DNA of 64,000 nt from Mytilus californianus (Eukaryota): positions 74,152,001 to 74,216,000 of the forward strand of contig NW_026262745.1 in the NCBI RefSeq assembly GCF_021869535.1. The letters run 5' to 3'. Positions 3,577 to 42,089 of the stretch are shown here, piece by piece; position 1 is the first letter of the stretch; the number at the start of each line of letters is the position of its first letter. A model generated the notes under the pieces. That model was given only the letters and a program-made list of their open reading frames with translations, did not search any database and was not told the DNA's origin. A program made the translations under genes and the position numbers.

Positions 3577-6500
3577 CCCTGCTTTCATGATATTCATATA
3601 TTCATGAATTAGGAAGAATATTCATGAATATTCATGAATATTCCAGTTTTATTCATGGGTTCTATTCCAGTGTCAAAATTATTCATGAATAAGAAGCATG
3701 AATAAACTGGAATATACATGAATTCTTAATAACTGTATGAAGACAACCAAAAAGAATTGTTAAAATGCCTACAGATTACTATAATGAAGTTTTTTTCTTT
3801 CTAAAACTAATTTGGGGACAAAAGAAACCTTTTTTTGGGACATGAATAAACATGAATAAACTTGAATGTTTGGACTTAGAATTTTTCTAATAGTCATATA
3901 ACATGAATAAGGATGAATAATGATGAATGAAATTTGGACTTAAAATATTTCTCGATTGTGTGACAAACATGAATAAGCATGAATAAAGCTGCATGATAAT
4001 GACTCAGAATTATGAGTGACCAACTGCATTAATAATACTGATGAAAAATGTAATTTGTTCTAGGATTTTGTTGTTTATTTGGACTATTTTTGGCTGAGGA
4101 AATATGTTCAATAATTAGATGAAAAAAATCATGAATATTTCATGTGACATCAAGCCCTTATGTTTGATATTTTGAATGACCCAACTTAAAACTACTGCTT
4201 TGAAAAATTGGATACCCTTTTTATAATGCCTCTCCCCCACTTATTGCTTCTAAAAATAAAAGTTGTCCTCTATCAATAAAAAATTTGAATTATTATTTGA
4301 ATGCACTTGATAGATCAATTAATGGAAGTAAAGATGAAAAAAATAATTTTTAAAATATTTATATTTGAAGTGTTTTCAGGTTAAAAATAATTAAAAGTAA
4401 TATTCTGATATGCATTTGCATTCAATTTGTTTTATTTTTTTTTTTTTTAGAAAAAAAAACAATAAATTTAAGGAATATATTGTGAAAAGGTGATAAAAAA
4501 GGGGAAGTAACTGAAAATTTTTTGAAATACGACATAAAGCAAAGGTTATTTGTGTTAACTAACAATGTGTTTGACACCAAAGCTGTCAGGTGAAGCCCTG
4601 CACTTAATGGGTCACTTAATTTGACAGTTTACACAGCTAGCTGAACTTCCTGTTGATGGAAGAATTACGAATTTCAGTTTGACCAGTATTTCAAAGTCAG
4701 AAAAATGCCGAGATTTTCGCGATAAAAACGACAGGGCGCCCGAGAAACGCCAACGGCTGTTTTGCCAGACAAGCTGGATCGTTTCTGATTTTCTACCTGT
4801 TGTCCGGCATTTAAATAACATAGAAAAATTATCAGATCAATGATAGGCCAACGATCGACATCGTAAAACCTTGGTTCTCAACTTATGTAAACAAGTCATG
4901 ACCACGTGGTTTTTAGTAATTGTACTGAACAGTCCGACCCTAGAAAATACCGTCCTAGATAATGCGGCCACTAGTTCATCCGCATGCACCCTGTGCCGAT
5001 TAAATTAAAGGGTTTTTTTTCTTATTTTTAAAAACTGGCCAGTAATAAATACTTTTATACGACACCCTTGATTTATTTTTATAATACCGTTACGGGGACG
5101 GATCAACTTCTGGCCGATATAATATGGGGCGAGATTGTCACCTCGACGTTAGCGTACTCAATAAAAACGTCATGAAATGTGATTACGCTGTAGCAAAATA
5201 GAAGATTCCATGTGAAGATGTTTTCAGATAAGTGCATTAAAAATTTAATTTAACATGTGTATATAATGAGATTATAAAATATAATTTATTGAGGAACTAT
5301 GATTTTTTTATGTTTTTTTTTTTAGCAAATCAACATCAGAAAATCTGAAAGCATAAACCTGGGAACGGTATATCTAATATATATGTTCCTGCATAAACTG
5401 AAAAATATATTTATTTTTAACAACATTGAATAATCTTGTTGTCACATAACAGGCATAACTGGTAGATATGTAAAAATTTAATTGAATTGTGTGAATGGTT
5501 ATTTGGTGAAAATAATAAGTCGCTAGTTTTTTATCTTCAGGGGATAAAAAAAGAGGGAGGGTAATTAATTTGATTCCAAATGGCTTCCAATGTATACTGT
5601 ATAAACATGCAATAATATTTCTATTGAATTTATTACTTCAAAATGTCTAGAACAATTGATTCTTTGTGGATTTTTTTGATACTTTTAGGGGATTAAATGA
5701 TTAAATGGAGCTGCCAATTTTGAAAGTAAACAGATTGCATGCAGATTCCAGTTACCTTTACTCAGCAATACTAGTTGGAAGTACAGAGACAGCAAATTTA
5801 ATTACAGAAAGGAGGAGAACTTCACATGTATCCTTTATATCTGACACACATTTTTAATATTATAATATTTGAAACTGAACAGCGAGCATCATTAAGCCAT
5901 GGTGAAAACTGCGTATCTAAATACAATTAAGACAATGAAATGCTTGAAGGTGTTAGTGAACATGGGGAGGAGGGGTGGGGTGAGTACCATATTAATGGGT
6001 AATTTAACAATATAAGCAGCCATTAAAAATGGCAAACAAGTTTGCTAGTAGTACTAGTATCTATAATTTTGATGGAAGTTTAAGGATCTGACATTAAATA
6101 CAAGTACATTTTTTTTAAATGGGAACTTGACAGCCATTGAAATAAGATATTAAACATGGCCAATACAATGTAATTCATGCCGCAATGTTTATATATACGT
6201 GACAGATTTGATACAACAAGGGCAATATTCATCTACCTTATAATGAGGAATATGCATTTAAACTAATAAAAGAAAATATTTGCAAAAGAACAAATTTGTG
6301 CATTAAAAATAGATTTTACTCAAATTTTTTAATTCCTTATAGAATACATGCAAGACATTAAGTCATTTTATTGGTCCTGAACTAAGGACATTCTCAGGAT
6401 TATCCAAGAATTATCCCAGGGCCAACTTAATGCAAGCAAATCATTCTGTAAATCCTGACATCAGGATAATTTCCTGAGACCAGGACCTGATGAATCCTAA

Positions 6501-28443: not shown

Positions 28444-29965
28444 GTAAAAATAATAAATCATAAGTTAGTGGTTCATATTCAAAATGTTTTCAGTCTTTTT
28501 CCTATTTTTGTCTTCTTCCTTATAATGCAATTCGTTTTACCACTTCTATGAAGGTTAGTACTGTTACACTGAATTAGATCGAAAAAGGGAAATGATCTCT
28601 CAACTTATTCAGATCTTAATAGCAGATTTTTGAAAGTCTAGGTTATATTTAAGTTTTCTTTCACAATTATTTATTGATTCGGGACGATTGAGATCTTGAC
28701 ATATTTAATAGACAAGTATATGTGTATCTTATCTTTATCTTTTTGTCATTTGATTAGCATAAAAGGAACTTAAAAAAAAAACGATAAAAATAAATCAAAG
28801 GAAAAGAGCCAAATTCCCCAATGTTTGTTTCACTCACAGAGTCAAAGTCTTAAAGTTGTATAATTCTATTTGAAATTGAATATAAAAATCTTTATTTTCA
28901 ACAATGTCATACAATTACAAAAACTCCAAAATGCTACTCAGCGCTACATATTGCTGTTGAAGACACAATGATTGTCAAATTTTAATGTTGCATTGAAGGA
29001 CATCTATTACCAATATCAATTAATTCATATTCAAAATTCAATACATAGCATAACTTCCAAGTAAAATAGTAATCTTAAGATATCAATATTTTGACCAACA
29101 AATTGAAATTTTAGCCTTAGAAAGTAAACATTGCGTCGTTTTACAAGTGTGTTAAACCACGCCATGATCTTGACTCAAAATACACTTACCACAACACAAT
29201 CTGTTGTACTGTTTTTAACATGTTTAAAGTTTTTTTCTGTACTATTTTAAATTTGATGCTTTTTCTACTGATTGAGATTAAGATGGACATGGTCGAAAGA
29301 GAATAGCAATAACTAATTTGACACCGAATATCCTCACTAGTAATCGAATTATAGTCTTAAATTGTCATTTTGATCTTAACATCATCTGAAAAGTCTGAAC
29401 GAGGAATTATCAAATCATATTCAGTTTTTAAGTCAATTTTCAGATTAATGACTGCTGTAAATTCAGTACTGGTTAGACAATTCACCTTGAGCAAATTCAG
29501 TACTGTGCAGTCGCTTTTCAGACAAATTGTATAACATATATTACAAAAGACTTATTCAAAATCAAAGCCACAATAACTACTAAAAGGCAAAGGTGTTAAT
29601 TCAGATTCAACAAAATTGGATTAATAATAGACTTTGTATTGGAGTTAACAAGTTTATACTAAAAGTTAAAAAAGAAAGAAGGTTTGCTGCATTACCACTA
29701 AGTAGTGAAATCCCTTTCAAACTGAAAACCAAATTGTGGAGGAATTGAAATGTGATGTGTAATCAGGTACTGATTGAAAAATAAACGAAATCACATCGGG
29801 TTCCTGTAGCTCAATATTTTGACTTCTATGAAATGTTTCGTGCATTGTTGGTTGTCTGTTTGTTTTGTTTCTGTCTTTGGCTGCTCTCATTCAATTACTT
29901 TCTTGGTATTTTGTCTCCGTTCTCTTGGAAATTTTTTAATACCAATTTAACTCGAATTATTTCAG

Positions 29966-30151
29966 ATGAAACTATGAAGAAGGCTAAACAATTAACTGAA
30001 CTCGAAGTCAAAATTGAGACGAATAATAAATTCCATAATACAGTGAGCAATAAACTCGAGGAAAAGATTGAACAAATGAAGACAAACCAAATGAAAAAAG
30101 AATCAAAATTATTATCTATTGAATCTGAAGTTACTAAAAACAGTGAGAGAG
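29966..30151 (+). CDS. C1qDC-type gene B, exon 2 (coiled coil); no C1q exon found downstream
   Basis: Acceptor ATTATTTCAG|AT GAA and donor AGA G|GTTAAT; 186 bp, phase 1-1, homologous to gene A exon 2. Confidence 0.88.
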
Positions 30152-30462
30152 GTTAATTTGTTTGATATTTATTGTATAACATATATTATAAAATAATGTA
30201 AAAAGAAGAACATTTGGTGATTATGTGGTTATTATTTATATATATATATATACATGTATATATACATATTTTAAATTGTAACACACGTATACATTTTATA
30301 TATACAACACCTTCATATGCATGTGAAGTTAGCAACCGGTTCGTTATACGATTTTCAATATCCGACCAGCTGTTAAAATTCGGTTCGATATTCAAATTTG
30401 TTTAGGTAAAAGTAATACAAAAATGAATTATAGTTAAAAAGGGTAAAAAGACACCCATTTCC

Positions 30463-32277
30463 CATGTTATAACAGGAGATCTTAACATCGTTCAAGACCG
30501 AGAGTTAAAATCATTCCTCAGTAAAGGACCTAAATATCGTCCCCCGTCAATTATTAATTGGAATGAGTGTCGTAATATCATCCACGACTCACTCCATACT
30601 TACTGTTTGAAATGGATAAAACGGGAAAAAGCTGACAAAAAATCTTTGGACTCTTTTTTTAAATCAGTAATGAACATAGTTGATATACGTATTCAACATT
30701 TTAAAGAACATTTTACTCTTAACAATAACCACAATAAACCTATTTCTCGTATCAAACATAAACTAAAAGAACTAGCCAAGGAATTTGTTTTTGTCCCGGC
30801 CGATAAAGCTGCTAATAATATTATTATTGTTTGACGTAAATTTTACATTGAGGTTCTGAAAAAAGAAATCACCAATTCACCAACATTCCAACTGACTCCA
30901 TTTTCAGAAAACGACATCTGTAACAAACATAAACTTTTAGCTACCGCTTTACAAGCAGAACCAAATACAATGAAAGTCCCAACTATGTATTGGCTTCCGA
31001 AGCTACACAAAACACCTTACAAATATAGATTCATTTCGTCTTCAAGCCATTGTTCCACTACTAAATTGTCTATTCTTCTTACCAGTACACTTGGTACAAT
31101 CAAAAACCTGATAATAAATTGTTCAAATAAGGCCTTCGAAAATAGTGGAATTAATTACTTTTGGAGTGTCAAGAACTCGTTGGAAGTACTTGATAAATTG
31201 CATGCATATATTGGTGATTTTGAATCTGTTCAAAGTTTTGATTTTTCTACCCTATATACCACATTGCCTCACATTCTCATTAAGAAAAAATTCACACACC
31301 TAATTAAATGGGCATTTAAAAAGTCAGAATGTGAATATATATGTTCAAACTCTTTTAGGTCATTTTTTAGTAGCAATAAACAAAAAAACTATGTCAATTG
31401 GACATGCTTTGATACTATATATGCCCTTGAATTTTTACTAGATAACATTTTTGTTCGCTTTGGAGATTCCGTATATCGTCAGGTTATCGGAATTCCAATG
31501 GGGACTAACTGTGCACCACTTATTGCGGACCTTTTTTTGTATTGCTATGAGTTACAATTTATGACAAAAATCAGTAAAGACCCATCGAAACAACATCTGA
31601 TACACAAATTTAATAATACTTTTAGATATTTGGATGATATTTTGGCTCTCAATAATGACGACTTCAGTATGTATACTAAAGAAATTTATCCTGTTGAACT
31701 TACTTTAAATAAAGCTAATACTAACAATGACCACTGCCCTTTCCTCGATCTTGATATCTATATCATTAACGGAAAGCTTAATACTAAAATATATGATAAA
31801 AGAGATGATTTTTCATTTCCTATCGTTAATTATCCATTTTTAGATGGTGACGTTCCCTTGTCACCATCTTACGGTGTTTATATATCTCAACTTGTACGAT
31901 TCGCTCGTGTATGTAACAATGTTTTAGATTTTAACGAGAGAAATGTATGTATTACTGAAAAATTATTACACCAGGGTTTTCGATATCACAAACTAGTCAA
32001 AACATTTACTAAATTTTATCATCGGTATAAGGACATCATTCGTAAATATAGCTCAACATGCAGACTTCTTATACGTTCAGGTATTTCACATCCAATTTTT
32101 TATGGAAATATTCTTTATAAAGCACAAAAATGTCAGTATTCACCTCTGAAACTAACAAAACCTTTAAATAGACTTATTAAGAAGGGATATAGTTACGATA
32201 CTGTTGTCAGGTCATTAAAGATTGCATATTTTGGCGTTGATATTGATTCACTTATAGGGTCTTTGCATCTGCACTAA
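30463..32277 (+). CDS. Naiad reverse transcriptase, 604 codons with one in-frame TGA (30832-30834), candidate selenocysteine
   Basis: ORF-track ORFs 30607-30834 and 30970-32277 are in the same frame and join through ...DKAANNIIIV-TGA-RKFYIEVLKKEI..., with no other stop or frameshift from 30463 to TAA at 32275-32277. Confidence 0.85.
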
Positions 32278-32316
32278 ACACATTTATTTAAAAACCAGTT
32301 GTTGGCATGACACGGG

Positions 32317-32405
32317 TTATGTTCTTCTCATATATGTTATGATGGTATGATACTAAACCCCTAACGGGAAGGATTGTGCCTGATATTCATATGATGAAGA
32401 CATAA
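32317..32405 (+). promoter_or_regulatory. SECIS element (form 2) in the Naiad 3' UTR
   Basis: Core A-UGAU (32339-32343) / UGAU (32381-32384). Helix II GGUAUGAUACU (32344-32354) pairs with AGGAUUGUGCC (32370-32380) at 10 of 11 positions. Unpaired AAA (32355-32357) and an apical minihelix CCC/GGG follow. An extended helix I pairs UUAUG-UCUUC-UCAUAU with AUAUGA-GAAGA-CAUAA. Confidence 0.85.
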
Positions 32406-35400
32406 TCTTTCAATCAGTTTAATTGAAGTCTGGAGCTGGCATGTCAGTTAACTGCTAGTAGTCTGTTGTTATTTATGTATTATTGTCATTTTGTTTATTT
32501 TCTTTGGTTACATCTTCTGACATCAGACTCGGACTTCTCTTGAACTGAATTTTAATGTGCGTATTGTTATGCGTTTACTTTTCTACATTGGCTAGAGGTA
32601 TAGGGGGAGGGTTGAGATCTCATAAACATGTTTAACCCCGCCGCATTTTTGCGCCTGTCCCAAGTCAGGAGCCTCTAGCCTTTGTTAGTCTTGTATTATT
32701 TTTAATTTTAGTTTCTTGTGTACAATTTGGAGTTTAGTATGGCGTTCATTATCACTGAACTAGTATATATATTTGTTTAGGGGCCAGCTGAAGGACGCCT
32801 CCGGGTGCGGGAATTTCTCGCTGCATTGAAGACCTGTTGGTGGCCTTCTGCTGTTGTCTGTTCTGTGGTCGGGTTGTTGTCTCTTTGACACATTCCCCAT
32901 TTCCATTCTCAATTTTATGTAGAAAATTGCTTTCTGGCGCCTTCAAGTTATCGTCAATTCTTGTTGTCATCGAATATAAACCCTGACGTAGATCTCAATT
33001 TTCTCTTAATAATTAATAGATTTTTATCAATAAAATGCAATCATAGATGTACTTTTGAAACATGATATTTCCAATATACAAAAAGCAAACGGTCACCACT
33101 TTGAAAATATCAATCAATTACATTATGTAAAACTGAAAAGATATTATCAAAACTTTTTGTCATTGATATGCACGAAGGAGGGCTGTGAGTGTCACCTTGC
33201 AATAAAAATCGTCTAAAATTCAGGTAAAAGGGCTTTAGGCATTGAATTAACATTCCTTATTACTCAATCTTCTTCAAATTATGCATAGATATAGCTAACA
33301 TATAAATACGAATGAAGTCAAGAGGAATTTATCGAAAACTTGTGTCTTCGATTTGTACGGTAGACTCAGATTGTCAGTGTTATATTCAAAGTATAATGCA
33401 AAAGTCGATTAAAGACCGCATAAATGACTGATAGCTTCCTGGTTCATTCAATAACAGTTGGCTTACAGCTAGAGTATGTACAGATAGAGGGAATCTATTT
33501 AAAATATGTTTCGTAAAACATTTCATCGTCGATATGCAAGGAGGGCTTACAATCAAAATTTTGGAGTTAAAAACGTCGAAAATGAAGGTAAAAGGACCCA
33601 GGACATTGAATAGACTTTCCTGATAACTCAATTTGCATTAATTATAAAAGGTGTCACTTTGCAATTAAAAATCGTCGGATTCCTCTTTATAATTGTTATA
33701 ACATGTTCAGTGTTGTGACAGAATTTAATACATTTGATTTGATATTTGAAAGAATTTCAACGGGACAAAATATGTATATTACTTTAAAACTCTGGAAATA
33801 AATTATACACGGGATGATTATTACAAGTATTGGTATTCAGTTTGGCTTACGTTTCCTATGTTATACCTGAATAACTGTGTAATGCTTCCTGTTTGTAATT
33901 TGTCAAGCTTATCTTGTGACATTACCTCTGTGTATTTTAAAACAGATAATATAATTTGAATAGACTGTAAACAGTTTGTATTTGTGCATCGAAAACAGCT
34001 GCTCTTAAAAAAAAAAAAAATTATCAACACATGCAATCTTCAGAAATTCGACAACTCAGTAATGATAACAGCAAATATTACCTGGAATATAAACATGATA
34101 ATGACACCGTCGCCGTTTTGAGAAATTCCGACATAGAAAAAAATTATTTTCTAAATCATATAGGTAATATAGGGATGAAATTTGCAATGGTTTCAAACTG
34201 TTAAAAACATCATTAGTGCCTGATTTATGTTACATGCATAACAATATAGTTGCAAATTATTAAATTTATCTAAGGCGTTTGTGAAATTGGTGTTTAAGTA
34301 GACGAGAGGTTACTTATTTTAAGATCGAGTCAATTTGCAAACGGAAAGAAAAAGAACGATATTTACAATTGATCAATTTTAATTTAAACTGTAAGGATCA
34401 ACATTTTTAGAAAGAATTATGTTCGAAGACCATGGAATTAACGGGAAAATTTAAGTTTATTATAGGTGATATGTAATTTCTGTAAGACAACTTGACTAAA
34501 TATGGTGGATAACCAAGTCATCAATATTGAGTGATGTCTTTCCTAGTAAGATATGATATTTCGAATACCAGCTGGCAATTTGAGACCTCCGTACATATTA
34601 AAGAAAAAATGTTTTCCTAAAATTCCTCCTAATAACATATGTATTTACATATTAACTTATTACACTGTTTTCAATTTGACGACAGTTAAATGATTAGGAT
34701 GGTCTTATGAACGTAACCATCTCTTTTCCGTTGATTTCGTAGATTTTTTTATAGAGTAAAGTGACACTTTAAGTCACCCGTATATATCGACATGAAGTTT
34801 TTCACAGATAATCTTTTGATTGTATTAATAGCTATGCGTAGCCTTACTGTAATCCAAATTGTATAGACTTTGAAAGATTAAAAAAGTCTCAGTGTCATTT
34901 AAGCGGTCCCTGGTAGTCCTTTGTTATATATTTTGAATTTGAAACCGCTTTTAAAATGTCCATTATTGTGTTCTATAATTTTTTTTTTTTTAAACTTTGA
35001 AATAAATCTTCTTGTTTCATATAAAATAATGTAGCCGTGGTAATGTTATAAAAGAATATTTTTGATTCATTTTTATCGTTCTAGATTGATAAGATCGGGT
35101 TGTATATAAGGGGTTATATATGAGGAGAACAAGAATTTACGATTACCTGTATTAGTAAGAAAAATATTTCTATCGTTTTTTCCTTCTTCATATCTACATT
35201 TTTTTAAACATGGTTATCATTTTAAGAATCTTTTACATATCCAGATTTTATATGTATTTACTGAAACATTTTGAATACCGAATTGGCTACTGACGGTTAA
35301 TTTGATATTGAATATCGAATACTGAATAACGAACCGGCGGCAACTGATTTTTACATTTTGCAGGTATTTCTCAGAGTACGCTCATAAACATGTGTAATAC

Positions 35401-40159: not shown

Positions 40160-40470
40160 AAGGCGAAATAAACCACAGATATCAAACTCATAAGTCGAAA
40201 ATAAACTGACAACACCATGGCTAAAAAATAAAAAGACCAATTTACAGACAACAGAACAAAATACAACATAAAAAATCGGGATGATATCCGTAAAATTTAC
40301 GAAGGGATGATTTCAACTTCACCATATGGAAATCTTGTAAACAGCATTCCCCTATCAACGAAATCATGATACGAAATACAAGCACTGGAATATCGTATCA
40401 ACTGGGAGATATATACTCCGTATGCAGGCGCTGCTGGAATGTTGCTACATATAAATGGAGAGTTCGCAAT
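40160..40470 (-). pseudogene. Internally deleted RT 3' fragment of a second Naiad-like family
   Basis: The minus strand reads NSPFICSNIPAAPAYGVYISQLIRYSSACISYHDFVDRG...VKLKSSLRKFYG, followed by that family's tail. Confidence 0.85.
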
Positions 40471-42089
40471 ACACCAGTTTCACATTTAACTGCGCATGTC
40501 TAATCTAATTAGCCAAACTATGAAATCACGCGATAATTCCCGAGAGTTCATCAACTGGGGGCTAACGGTTGATAAGCAGTGACCATGCAAAATCATCTGA
40601 TTAAATGTTTGTGTTTACATGTCAAAGCAACATGAGCATCATTTGAATCAAAATATGAACATTATTTTGACGAGACACCTTTATTAACAATGACACATTA
40701 AAAGGTTTTAAAACGGACTACTACTGTGTTGTTGCTTGCGGTAATATACGATCTGATATGCAGCCTGGCTTTAATTGTACCTTTAATTGTCACAAATTCA
40801 CGGTGAGGTCGTTCACTTAACGGGAAGAATAAATTAGATAAATAAGCAGGGCTCACTTCATAAACATAGTATTAGGTCATAAATTAAGAAGTCAATTTAC
40901 ATCTAAGCCATGTGGAATCCTCGTTTTACCTTGTACAATCTCACTAGGTGACAATTGATAAAAAACGTACTCTTTTTATACATACAGTTACTGAAAAAGG
41001 GCGACCATTTGATTAATTTATTTAACTTTTGTACACAATTATTTCCTGCATTTTGTGTTGCAGATTATTCTTTTCCATCCTGCCTTTTCATACTTATTTA
41101 ATTTTTAACTCCTACTAGAATATTAATTGTCTAACCCTCCCCCTAAAATTCAAATGGTCATCCCCTAATACATATACTTAAAATGTTAACCCTAAGACCT
41201 AATTTACACTGATATATTATGGCCAGTACGGTTAATGCCACTTGGGATATTTTAATGATTTAGGAGGGGGTCATTCAGCAATTTGATATTTTTTTTATAG
41301 CAAAGTGTGGTAAATATAGGATATTCAATTAATTTTAATGACATGAAAAATAATAAAGTTTAAAATATGTAGAAAATTACTCTGGCTGCTGGCACTAAAC
41401 CTCTGCTTAGACGAGGTCGTTCATGAACATAGCTTAGAAATTAAAATAGTATTGAATGCGTTGTATTATAGTCTGATGTTTGAAAATTAAAGATAAACCT
41501 GTATTTCCTATACGTATTTTAAAACTGCCTAATATCTCACTTCATTATCATGGCCGTCTAAAATATCACTGACGCAGAAATATTTGAAACAAATGTACAT
41601 ACAAATAAGAGGATGTGGTATGAGTGTCAATGGGACAAATCTCAATCCAAGTACCAATGTATAAAAAGTTATAAAACAATTATAAGTCAAAGTACGGTCT
41701 TCAACACGGAGCTGATGCCCTGTCTACTACATGTCTATCGCTAATAGGTTTGGTATTACAATCAACAGGAAAGTGTTCTATTTTATGTTATATGGTTGCT
41801 TTCATCTGTCATTTGACTCTGGTGGATAGTTGTCTCGTTTGCAATCATACCACATCTTTTTGGTTTAAATTTGTTATTCTCTGTATAAACGGTCAAACTA
41901 TTTATTCAGAATATATAAAATAAACGATTATTAATATCTTAAACCTAAAATAATCTCAAGCATACACCATGAGAGAGATGTATATTATTATTTGATTAGA
42001 TATTGTGTTGTTAAATATCTGAGTCAATTTGATGTAGCCCCCTGTCACATATGATATCGTTAATTATCGCGGGATTTAAACTCAAACGC

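Follow-up and report, generated by a model that had tools for sequence, protein, structure and literature searches.

Results

A truncated Naiad-type retroelement in the window

The window, a stretch of 64,000 nucleotides of the Mytilus californianus genome (NW_026262745.1, positions 74,152,001 to 74,216,000), carries a 5'-truncated copy of a retroelement that can be assigned, from its domain order and motifs, to the Naiad-type Penelope-like elements (PLE). Its features are listed in Table 1. Over 2469 aligned nucleotides the copy departed from the full-length element L034 by three mismatches and one indel (99.9% intact), while the first ~1550 nt were missing, and with them the 5'UTR, the endonuclease (EN) domain, and all but one of the family's four UGAs. 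Genomic copies of the family vary at their 5' ends and have a common 3' end. We regard the window copy as a recent insertion and, because it is 5'-truncated, as a dead one. Naiads are reported to favor (TA)n microsatellites as insertion sites (Craig et al. 2021, PMC8557442); about 190 bp upstream of the window copy, away from the junction, there is a (TA)n-like tract (three 3' junctions were inspected).

Counted from position 30463, the reading frame runs for 123 codons to an in-frame TGA (DKAANNIIIV-TGA-RKFY) and for another 480 codons to a TAA, and direct reading thus bore out an earlier, sequence-only reading of this DNA, which had described a 604-codon reverse transcriptase (RT) frame with that TGA as its sole stop. 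The first TAA or TAG past the ORF was a TAA in all ten related loci that were read; in one of them, L050, translation probably ends at a TGA that precedes it.

Table 1. Features of the element copy in the window (positions are those of the window)
Feature	Position	Strand	Basis
5'-truncated copy of a ~4020-bp (~4.02-kb) Naiad-type Penelope-like retroelement	30453..32921	+	Local alignment to full-length L034
Remnant of the single ORF, codons 396-1002 (linker end, whole RT, C-terminal domain)	30454..32274	+	Translation; 100% identity by tblastn of full-length pieces
DKA motif of Naiad/PLE RTs (GAT AAA GCT)	30802..30810	+	Read directly; in 18/18 aligned relatives
In-frame TGA, family codon 522, predicted selenocysteine, eighth residue after DKA	30832..30834	+	Cys in several relatives; copy counts
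RT catalytic motif YLDD within FRYLDDIL	31627..31638	+	R-Y-L-D invariant, second D nearly so (32-sequence alignment)
True stop codon TAA	32275..32277	+	Read directly
3'UTR and element tail, ~644 nt	32278..32921	+	Alignment to L034; tail recurs at full-length insertions as a partial upstream copy (pseudo-LTR)
SECIS, form-2-like	32329..32393	+	Rfam SECIS_1, MFE fold, own covariance model and covariation

The full-length element has four in-frame UGAs at cysteine positions

The full-length ORF comprises 1002 codons with TGA at codons 55, 86, 97, and 522 and without any TAA or TAG. TGA55 occupies the position of the second Cys of a CX4CxxC motif, TGA86 that of the Cys before the GIY-YIG domain, TGA97 that of the first Cys of CCHH, and TGA522 that of the Cys eight residues after DKA; in relatives, all four columns hold only Cys or UGA. 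With U standing for the predicted selenocysteine (Sec), the full-length unit reads MKLRNGK..., CX4UxxC, ...IIYLLT-U-NKPGCGIQYVGETG..., and then the RT. The zinc-finger-like motif upstream of the GIY-YIG domain has the form C-HAKK-U-LT-C, the two cysteines of the CCHH inside the GIY-YIG core read U97...C102, the first being replaced by the Sec codon, and the CxC of the EN-RT linker (TS-C-N-C-SNSEYIY, codons 385-387) was aligned in every family covering the site. The sequence-only reading had counted one UGA, which is correct for the window copy, where the others are absent because of the truncation, but not for the family with its four; further UGAs, which it had proposed to look for in the missing N-terminal part, were indeed found there, three in number and all at Cys positions.

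Full-length units occur in tandem arrays with a 4020-bp period, and a partial tail stands upstream of full-length L034 (pseudo-LTR arrangement). An Rfam search (E ≤ 1) of 10 kb with two tandem units found no hammerhead ribozyme and reported only the SECIS.

Neither an RT nor a GIY-YIG domain was recognized by Pfam in any piece of the protein, and PDB sequence and profile searches of the RT and the endonuclease gave chance matches only. The AF2 model of the segment encoded by 30835-32274 had a pLDDT of 82.7, and its top 14 PDB matches were telomerase TERTs (E from 1.8e-9 to 2.4e-7); the YLDD and GIPMGTN motifs varied hardly at all across the 32 aligned sequences. We class the RT, on its sequence and modeled fold, as PLE-type and TERT-related. 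For the EN piece, the nearest Atlas cluster was GIY-YIG (PF01541; score 0.94, 191 shared features), and its fold had a pLDDT of 45, for a piece that starts after U97, lacks the GIY strand, and was represented by only six sequences; its classification as a putative GIY-YIG endonuclease draws on the motifs and on this language-model look-alike.

A form-2-like SECIS follows the stop codon

The Rfam SECIS_1 model covered the hairpin past the stop codon end to end (31.7 bits, E = 0.0014 in the 3.5 kb searched), with a score below the gathering score of 35. The core consists of AUGA at 32339-32342 and UGAU at 32381-32384, with an unpaired AAA at 32355-32357, a helix II of 10 bp that includes one A.G mismatch (32344-32353 with 32371-32380), a CCC/GGG mini-helix (32359-61 with 32366-68), and a helix I (32329-33 with 32389-93). 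The minimum free energy (MFE) fold of 32290-32420 had the same architecture (-33.6 kcal/mol, z = -2.2 versus shuffles), so that the form-2 features named in the sequence-only reading were recovered by both approaches. Its distance from the stop, earlier given as forty nucleotides, was close to what we found, namely 51 nt, or ~37 nt if the extended helix I is counted.

In five loci, Rfam SECIS scores were 31.7, 29.9, 28.8, 28.0, and 25.0 bits, and a joint Rfam scan of nine loci (E ≤ 10) reported a SECIS in L039 and L043 only. MAFFT had misaligned the distant SECIS sequences; a covariance model of our own, built from four sequences, placed a SECIS directly past the stop in L044, L047, L050, L045, L033, and L048/49. 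No SECIS was found within 226 nt past the stop of L046, whose 3'UTR differs from that of its twin L047 from the stop onward. In the resulting alignment, UGA, AAA, and GA were invariant, and helices I and II were paired in 125 of 135 cells as against 82.9 ± 4.2 in 5000 column shuffles, a count that must be taken as inflated, because the alignment was fitted to the model and the sequences are related. Thus the hairpin, whose conservation among copies the earlier reading had made a point to check, is kept and covaries across nine families down to ~50% protein identity, L046 excepted.

TGA is the codon of an abundant, young, and transcribed family

Among the 526 genomic copies with exact 15+15-nt flanks around the RT TGA, codon 522 was TGT or TGC in none and TGG in three, and all 36 fetched copies covering this site carried TGA, which disposes of the concern, raised beforehand, that sister copies might have Cys codons there. 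At the three N-terminal sites, TGC, TGG, or TGT was present in two, no, and no copies, respectively, and an exact 66-mer containing both TGA86 and TGA97 was found in 95 copies. TGA is therefore the family's own codon.

The 46-nt SECIS core, with up to three mismatches, occurred 5,445 times in the genome, while its reversed control did not occur at all. The RT UGA was reached by 1,661 copies and the endonuclease by at least 95, and the best 40 genomic copies were ~100% identical; the family is both young and very abundant. A first look at Naiad-like RT sequence gave 78,862 candidates in this genome, and the best 71 genomic matches to a Cys-type Naiad query all contained TGA.

Three raw RNA-seq runs covered the ORF, with unique flanks at ~0. 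Of the 37 ORF variants listed, 29 fell on third codon positions, and none was listed at any TGA in these runs. The reads broke off at the tail end, at L034:1135 and L034:5153; their strandedness was mixed and, as reads of a multi-copy family, they could partly be host-transcript read-through. The host genome has two tRNA-Sec(UCA) genes (79.6 and 77 bits), both above the Rfam cut-off and confirmed by ARAGORN.

Relatives exchange UGA and Cys codons under purifying selection

Between the window's family and its sister family L032, Ks was ~1.9 (saturated) and Ka/Ks was 0.075 overall and 0.06-0.15 in the individual segments between TGAs. L032 itself is not present in this genome, where its best matches are the window's family at 76% nucleotide identity. 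The two families have three TGAs in common and the fourth is swapped, with TGA versus TGT at codon 522 and TGT versus TGA at codon 385. Within the genome, the subfamily L039, 4% diverged, kept all four TGAs with a Ka/Ks of 0.12. These values point to strong purifying selection downstream of each TGA.

In a 12-row alignment, TGA was found in every row covering codons 55, 86, and 97, and in 11 of 12 rows at the eighth position after DKA. The sequence-only reading had stated that related RTs have Cys at this codon; six relatives (P0002-P0004, P0026, P0010, and P0098) do read DKAANN...VC. Related families, including one more in this genome, have an additional Sec codon in the CxC linker, at its first Cys, which brings the number of predicted Sec to as many as five, and changes between Cys and UGA at one site numbered at least four among 18 lineages.

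Discussion

We consider it highly probable (roughly 0.88) that the family is a Naiad retrotransposon whose four UGAs are decoded as Sec by means of its own SECIS. The single 1002-codon ORF would encode, from its N-terminus on, a GIY-YIG endonuclease, a linker with CxC, and a TERT-like RT, and the one SECIS past the TAA would recruit the host tRNA-Sec and presumably SBP2 and eEFSec, whereby UGAs on the 5' side of the hairpin, at distances of ~1.5 to 2.9 kb, would be read as Sec and not as stop. If Sec were not inserted, as we infer it is, ribosomes would stop at codon 55 and reach neither the endonuclease nor the RT; the protein made with Sec may have driven the very recent amplification of the family. 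For one SECIS to act on four UGAs, the farthest of them 2.9 kb off, processive recoding must be efficient, for which SelenoP is the only known molluscan precedent.

The same UGAs might be decoded independently of a SECIS: near-cognate tRNAs (those for Cys, Trp, or Arg) might read through them as leaky stops, or they might terminate translation in a regulated way and so yield a graded series of products, with the 3' hairpin serving RNA stability or recognition of the 3' end by the RT in target-primed reverse transcription. PLE RTs must recognize their own 3'UTR, and a conserved 3' structure could serve that; the hairpin scores under the Rfam gathering score, TGG is found at the sites in a few copies, and Sec insertion is a prediction. 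We nevertheless find this explanation improbable, since the UGAs occur only at invariant Cys positions and alternate between families with Cys codons only, the SECIS model covers the hairpin over its full length in five loci, and the unpaired UGA, AAA, and GA that are specific to a SECIS are kept exactly while the helices covary. Moreover, with four leaky stops in series, hardly any full-length protein would be made, whereas the ORF shows strong purifying selection along its entire length.

Even less probable, in our view, is a non-autonomous or dead family, in which the TGAs would be true nonsense codons of the master copy, nothing past the first TGA would be translated, and mobilization would be provided in trans by a Cys-encoding Naiad. 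Most copies, that of the window included, are indeed truncated and non-coding, and helpers could exist among the many first-look Naiad-like RT candidates. However, Ka/Ks remains low past each TGA, both between the families and between the in-genome subfamilies, the 1002 codons are interrupted by TGA only and never by TAA or TAG, families with as little as ~50% identity keep the TGAs in the same Cys columns, and the best genomic matches to the Cys-type query (71 of 71) carry TGA themselves. As for a private nonsense mutation next to a chance hairpin in one decayed copy, its probability is negligible and the copy counts refute it: 523 of the 526 exact-flank copies have no TGB codon, every fetched copy covering the site has TGA, and the SECIS core recurs in thousands of places as against none for its reversed control.

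The Sec-encoding Naiads that the sequence-only reading had mentioned for spiders and clams are documented, and only from two species of each (Craig et al. 2021, PMC8557442), where the Cys eight residues after DKA is named as a Sec site. Those of the clams Sinonovacula constricta (Naiad_Scon) and Mercenaria mercenaria (Naiad_Mmer) resemble the mussel element in having the same single ORF with an N-terminal GIY-YIG domain, CxC linker, and RT, three to four in-frame UGAs at conserved Cys positions, and a SECIS just past the UAA/UAG stop, and three of the four mussel Sec sites are clam sites as well (the Cys before GIY-YIG, the first CCHH Cys, and the eighth residue after DKA). They differ in that (i) the host is here a mussel (Mytilida, Pteriomorphia), whereas the clams are heterodonts, (ii) the fourth mussel Sec, at the second Cys of CX2-5CxxC, has been published for a spider element only, (iii) the published sites do not include the first linker Cys (CxC), at which related families here have a predicted Sec, and (iv) the mussel SECIS resembles form 2 and starts 51 nt after the stop, in contrast to the 'type I, 1-21 bp' of that report (Craig et al. 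2021, PMC8557442). The three shared sites suggest that the mussel and clam Sec Naiads have a common ancestry within bivalves, with the clam elements compared by their published description only. Of the earlier proposal of a further or independent lineage, the first part is supported, as both the Sec pattern and the mussel host differ, and the second is not, as three of the four Sec sites are shared with clams.

The Stegodyphus elements Naiad_Sdum and Naiad_Smim are alike in that their 3'UTR contains a SECIS and that Sec is found at cysteines of CX2-5CxxC, at the Cys before GIY-YIG, and eight residues past DKA, but their CX2-5CxxC Sec is at the first or at the first and second Cys and there is none at CCHH; their origin was inferred to be independent of that of the bivalve ones (Craig et al. 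2021, PMC8557442). Cys-encoding bivalve Naiads, those of Mytilus included, share with the family the domain order, the DKA and CxC motifs, tandem and pseudo-LTR insertions, 5' truncation, the absence of a canonical hammerhead, and copy numbers in the thousands, but have Cys throughout. The published mussel Naiads carry a 5-residue insert in CX2-5CxxC (Craig et al. 2021, PMC8557442), which is absent from the window's family (C-HAKK-U-LT-C). Finally, molluscan SelenoP is described as a case of processive recoding of multiple UGAs, at which bivalve hosts are efficient (Baclaocos et al. 2019, as cited in Craig et al. 2021, PMC8557442). It likewise has several UGAs in one ORF decoded from a 3'UTR SECIS, but it is a host gene with typically two SECIS and a Sec-rich tail, whereas the mussel element is mobile, has one SECIS, and is predicted to have Sec in place of zinc-finger and catalytic-domain cysteines. 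The mussel family is a genuine case, and a richer one, of an oddity already known and involves no new principle.

The family takes selenoprotein-coding transposons, so far the subject of one paper and four species, into mussels, in an abundant, young, and transcribed form. Gene callers split such ORFs at the UGA or read the UGA as Trp under genetic code 4 (P0118/L033), with the result that public protein sets carry wrong annotations of these elements. A broader and, taken as a whole, rather unlikely reading is that Sec-coding Naiads are the main active transposable element (TE) lineage of the mussel, that their retrotransposition depends on selenium and on the capacity of the Sec machinery, that scattered SECIS may seed host selenoproteins or titrate SBP2, and that, in a TE lineage that already has a SECIS, one mutation is enough to turn any conserved Cys codon into UGA or back. 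If this were true, more than 5,000 near-identical, ready-made SECIS would have been scattered by 5'-truncated copies, some perhaps into host 3'UTRs. With thousands of dispersed SECIS copies, the seeding of new selenoprotein genes by TEs becomes directly testable in one genome, and the related families, which differ in their Sec sites (four or five, with swaps), lend themselves, as a natural series, to the question of what favors Sec over Cys in zinc-finger and polymerase motifs.

A truncated Naiad-type element with a single in-frame TGA

Direct reading of positions 30000-32800 gave an RT reading frame of 604 codons whose sole internal stop is a TGA (...PADKAANNIIIV-TGA-RKFYIEVL...), followed past the true stop by a SECIS-like hairpin (Table). 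The sequence-only reading had described both, and its description was accurate. Over the 2469 nt of the insertion, three mismatches and one indel separate the window copy from a full-length copy (L034), and the first ~1550 nt of the element are missing; it is thus a very young, dead, 5'-truncated insertion. Elsewhere in the window, a further Penelope-like/Naiad RT is present as a short, degenerate remnant with 35-46% amino acid identity to the conserved YDKRDDF...FPFLDGD region.

A DNA search of the whole host genome returned 3,981 first-look candidate copies, the 40 scored ones being ~100% identical. The copies share a common 3' end, have ragged 5' ends and include tandem arrays with a period of 4020 bp. 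The full unit L031 (minus strand) contains a 1002-codon ORF that begins with MKLRNGK and, besides codon 522, is interrupted by three TGAs and by no TAA or TAG. Its product has an N-terminal GIY-YIG domain, a CxC linker and an RT with the DKA motif, and an Rfam scan found no hammerhead in the element. This domain order, the tandem/pseudo-LTR insertions and the lack of a hammerhead together place the element among the Penelope-like elements that Craig et al. 2021 (PMC8557442) define as the Naiad clade. Sequence searches against Pfam and PDB gave no matches to it; the RT piece, modelled with AlphaFold at pLDDT 82.7, had telomerase TERTs as its 14 top structural matches (E down to 1.8e-9), which is what a Penelope-like RT should give, and the nearest ESM-Atlas cluster of the endonuclease piece was GIY-YIG (0.94).

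Table. Location of the features (U, in-frame UGA)
Feature	Location	Strand	Description
RT reading frame	window 30463-32277	+	123 codons, TGA, 480 codons, TAA
In-frame TGA	window 30832-30834	+	family codon 522; eight residues past DKA (DKA+8)
Stop codon TAA	window 32275-32277	+	
SECIS	window 32329-32393	+	starts 51 nt past TAA
Window copy	window 30453-32921	+	span aligned to L034
Upstream ORF	window 29833-30156	+	107 codons
Other RT fragment	window 40246-40479	-	degenerate
TGA	codon 55		C-HAKK-U-LT-C; second Cys, CX2-5CxxC finger
TGA	codon 86		TDIT-U-KTNSIIY; Cys just before GIY-YIG
TGA	codon 97		IIYLLT-U-NKPGCGIQYVGETG; first Cys, CCHH
RNA depth peaks	L034:1031-1207, 5102-5455		tail fragment and adjoining repeat
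Read break-off	L034:5278-5349		adjoining unrelated repeat
ORF end/SECIS overlap	L050:2028-2104		TARA metagenome scaffold
tRNA-Ser array	G000:C154:27755505-27807263 (L042)		728-bp period

TGA is the family codon and the frame is constrained

The RT site was found in 1,661 host-genome copies with up to two flank mismatches. Among the 526 with exact flanks, TGG occurs in three and TGT or TGC in none, so the codon is not a private nonsense mutation in a family of Cys-encoding sister copies, the main ground on which the original proposal could have failed. At codons 55, 86 and 97, TGC, TGG or TGT occurs in 2, 0 and 0 copies, respectively, and an exact 66-mer holding TGA86 and TGA97 is present in 95 copies.

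A sister family from a metagenome scaffold (L032; 81% amino acid identity in the RT) is co-linear across all 1002 codons and shares the TGAs at codons 55, 86 and 97, whereas codon 522 is TGT there and codon 385, at which the CxC linker has its first Cys, is TGA rather than TGT. Between the two families synonymous sites are saturated (Ks ~1.9), and Ka/Ks is 0.075 overall and 0.06-0.15 in every inter-TGA segment. A subfamily in the same genome, 4% diverged (L039), retains all four TGAs and an open frame (Ka/Ks 0.12). In a 12-row alignment taken from public assemblies, codons 55, 86 and 97 are TGA in every row covering them, DKA+8 is TGA in 11 of 12 and the CxC site in four; the L044 family has five TGAs, and the same five-UGA family is also present in the host genome (L051-L058). 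A Cys-type Naiad query found TGA inside all of its best 71 genomic matches, and the Cys/Sec state at DKA+8 changed at least four times in a tree of 18 RT sequences. Evidently, Cys and Sec codons interconvert freely once a SECIS is present.

Four public predicted proteins (P0118, P0106, P0085 and P0096) have Trp at the Sec positions. The DNA of P0118 (L033) has TGA, and this locus does not yield the protein under the standard or the bacterial code, so that a gene call with genetic code 4 has translated TGA as Trp and masked the Sec codons.

A conserved SECIS lies directly past the stop

Rfam SECIS_1 matched the hairpin over its full length (31.7 bits, E=0.0014 in the 3.5 kb searched), below the gathering score of 35. 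The match comprises AUGA, a helix II of 10 bp that includes a single A.G mismatch, AAA left unpaired, a CCC/GGG mini-helix and UGAU; folding 32290-32420 to minimum energy reproduces this shape (-33.6 kcal/mol, z=-2.2). Rfam also placed a SECIS directly past the stop in L039 (29.9 bits), L043 (28.8), L032 (28.0) and L033 (25.0). Our own covariance model, trained on four of these five loci, located it at the same spot in L044, L047, L050, L045, L033 and L048/49. UGA, AAA and GA do not vary among the nine families compared, and the helix columns each show 2-5 distinct Watson-Crick or GU pair types; 125 of 135 helix I/II cells are paired, against 82.9 +/- 4.2 in 5000 column shuffles, with the caveat that the alignment was fitted to the model and consists of related sequences. 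Conservation and covariation of the hairpin, proposed as a check, are thus both seen. The 46-nt core occurs 5,445 times in the host genome with up to three mismatches.

In L050, the ORF of a related element apparently terminates at a TGA, and the following stop other than UGA overlaps with the SECIS, an arrangement that Craig et al. describe for Naiad_Mmer. L046 and L047 are two copies of one family, and the same 445-aa RT product is encoded by both. Their sequences diverge completely a few bases past the stop; L047 has a SECIS, and none was found in the 226 nt between the stop and the contig end in L046.

Host machinery and expression

The host genome contains two tRNA-Sec(UCA) genes. A separate tandem array (L042; ~50 or more units) has tRNA-Ser(UGA) and tRNA-Ser(CGA) genes in each sampled unit; against the tRNA-Sec model its units reached 42.8 bits, short of the cut-off. 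Near-identical copies of the element also occur in sequencing runs under four organism labels. In three raw RNA-seq runs, reads extend over the entire ORF, with depth rising toward the 3' end, ~0 in unique flanks and mixed strandedness; 29 of the 37 listed ORF variants fall at third codon positions, and none of those listed at a TGA. Beside L034, RNA depth far exceeds that of the ORF over the element's tail fragment and the adjoining unrelated repeat, where reads break off, which suggests that this insertion has other repeats of high expression or very high copy number next to it.

Relation to known selenoprotein Naiads

Craig et al. 2021 report selenoprotein Naiads only from Sinonovacula constricta, Mercenaria mercenaria and two Stegodyphus spiders, with 3-4 UGAs per element: at the Cys before GIY-YIG and DKA+8 in all four, at the first Cys of CCHH in the clam elements and at CX2-5CxxC cysteines in the spider elements, and with a type I SECIS 1-21 bp past the stop (PMC8557442). 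Our full-text literature searches found no report later than Craig et al. 2021. The window family is of the same kind, a real and well-supported case, and differs in four new respects: its host is a mussel; its sites are those of the clam elements with the second CX2-5CxxC Cys added; some of its relatives have a Sec codon at the CxC site, for up to five predicted Sec; and the form and spacing of its SECIS are different. Of the suggested "further or independent lineage", the first half is supported; the Sec sites shared with the clam elements argue against an origin independent of the clam lineage.

Predicted dependence on Sec insertion and genomic setting

In the proposed mechanism, a single 3'UTR SECIS would direct Sec insertion at four UGAs located 1.5-2.9 kb upstream of it. 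Without Sec insertion, translation would stop at codon 55, ahead of both enzymatic domains. About 300 bp upstream of the window insertion, on the same strand, lies an ORF whose predicted product is hydrophobic at its start and has a Lys/Glu-rich tail resembling a coiled coil. This ORF may be a host exon; if so, the SECIS-bearing fragment would sit in sense within a host gene.
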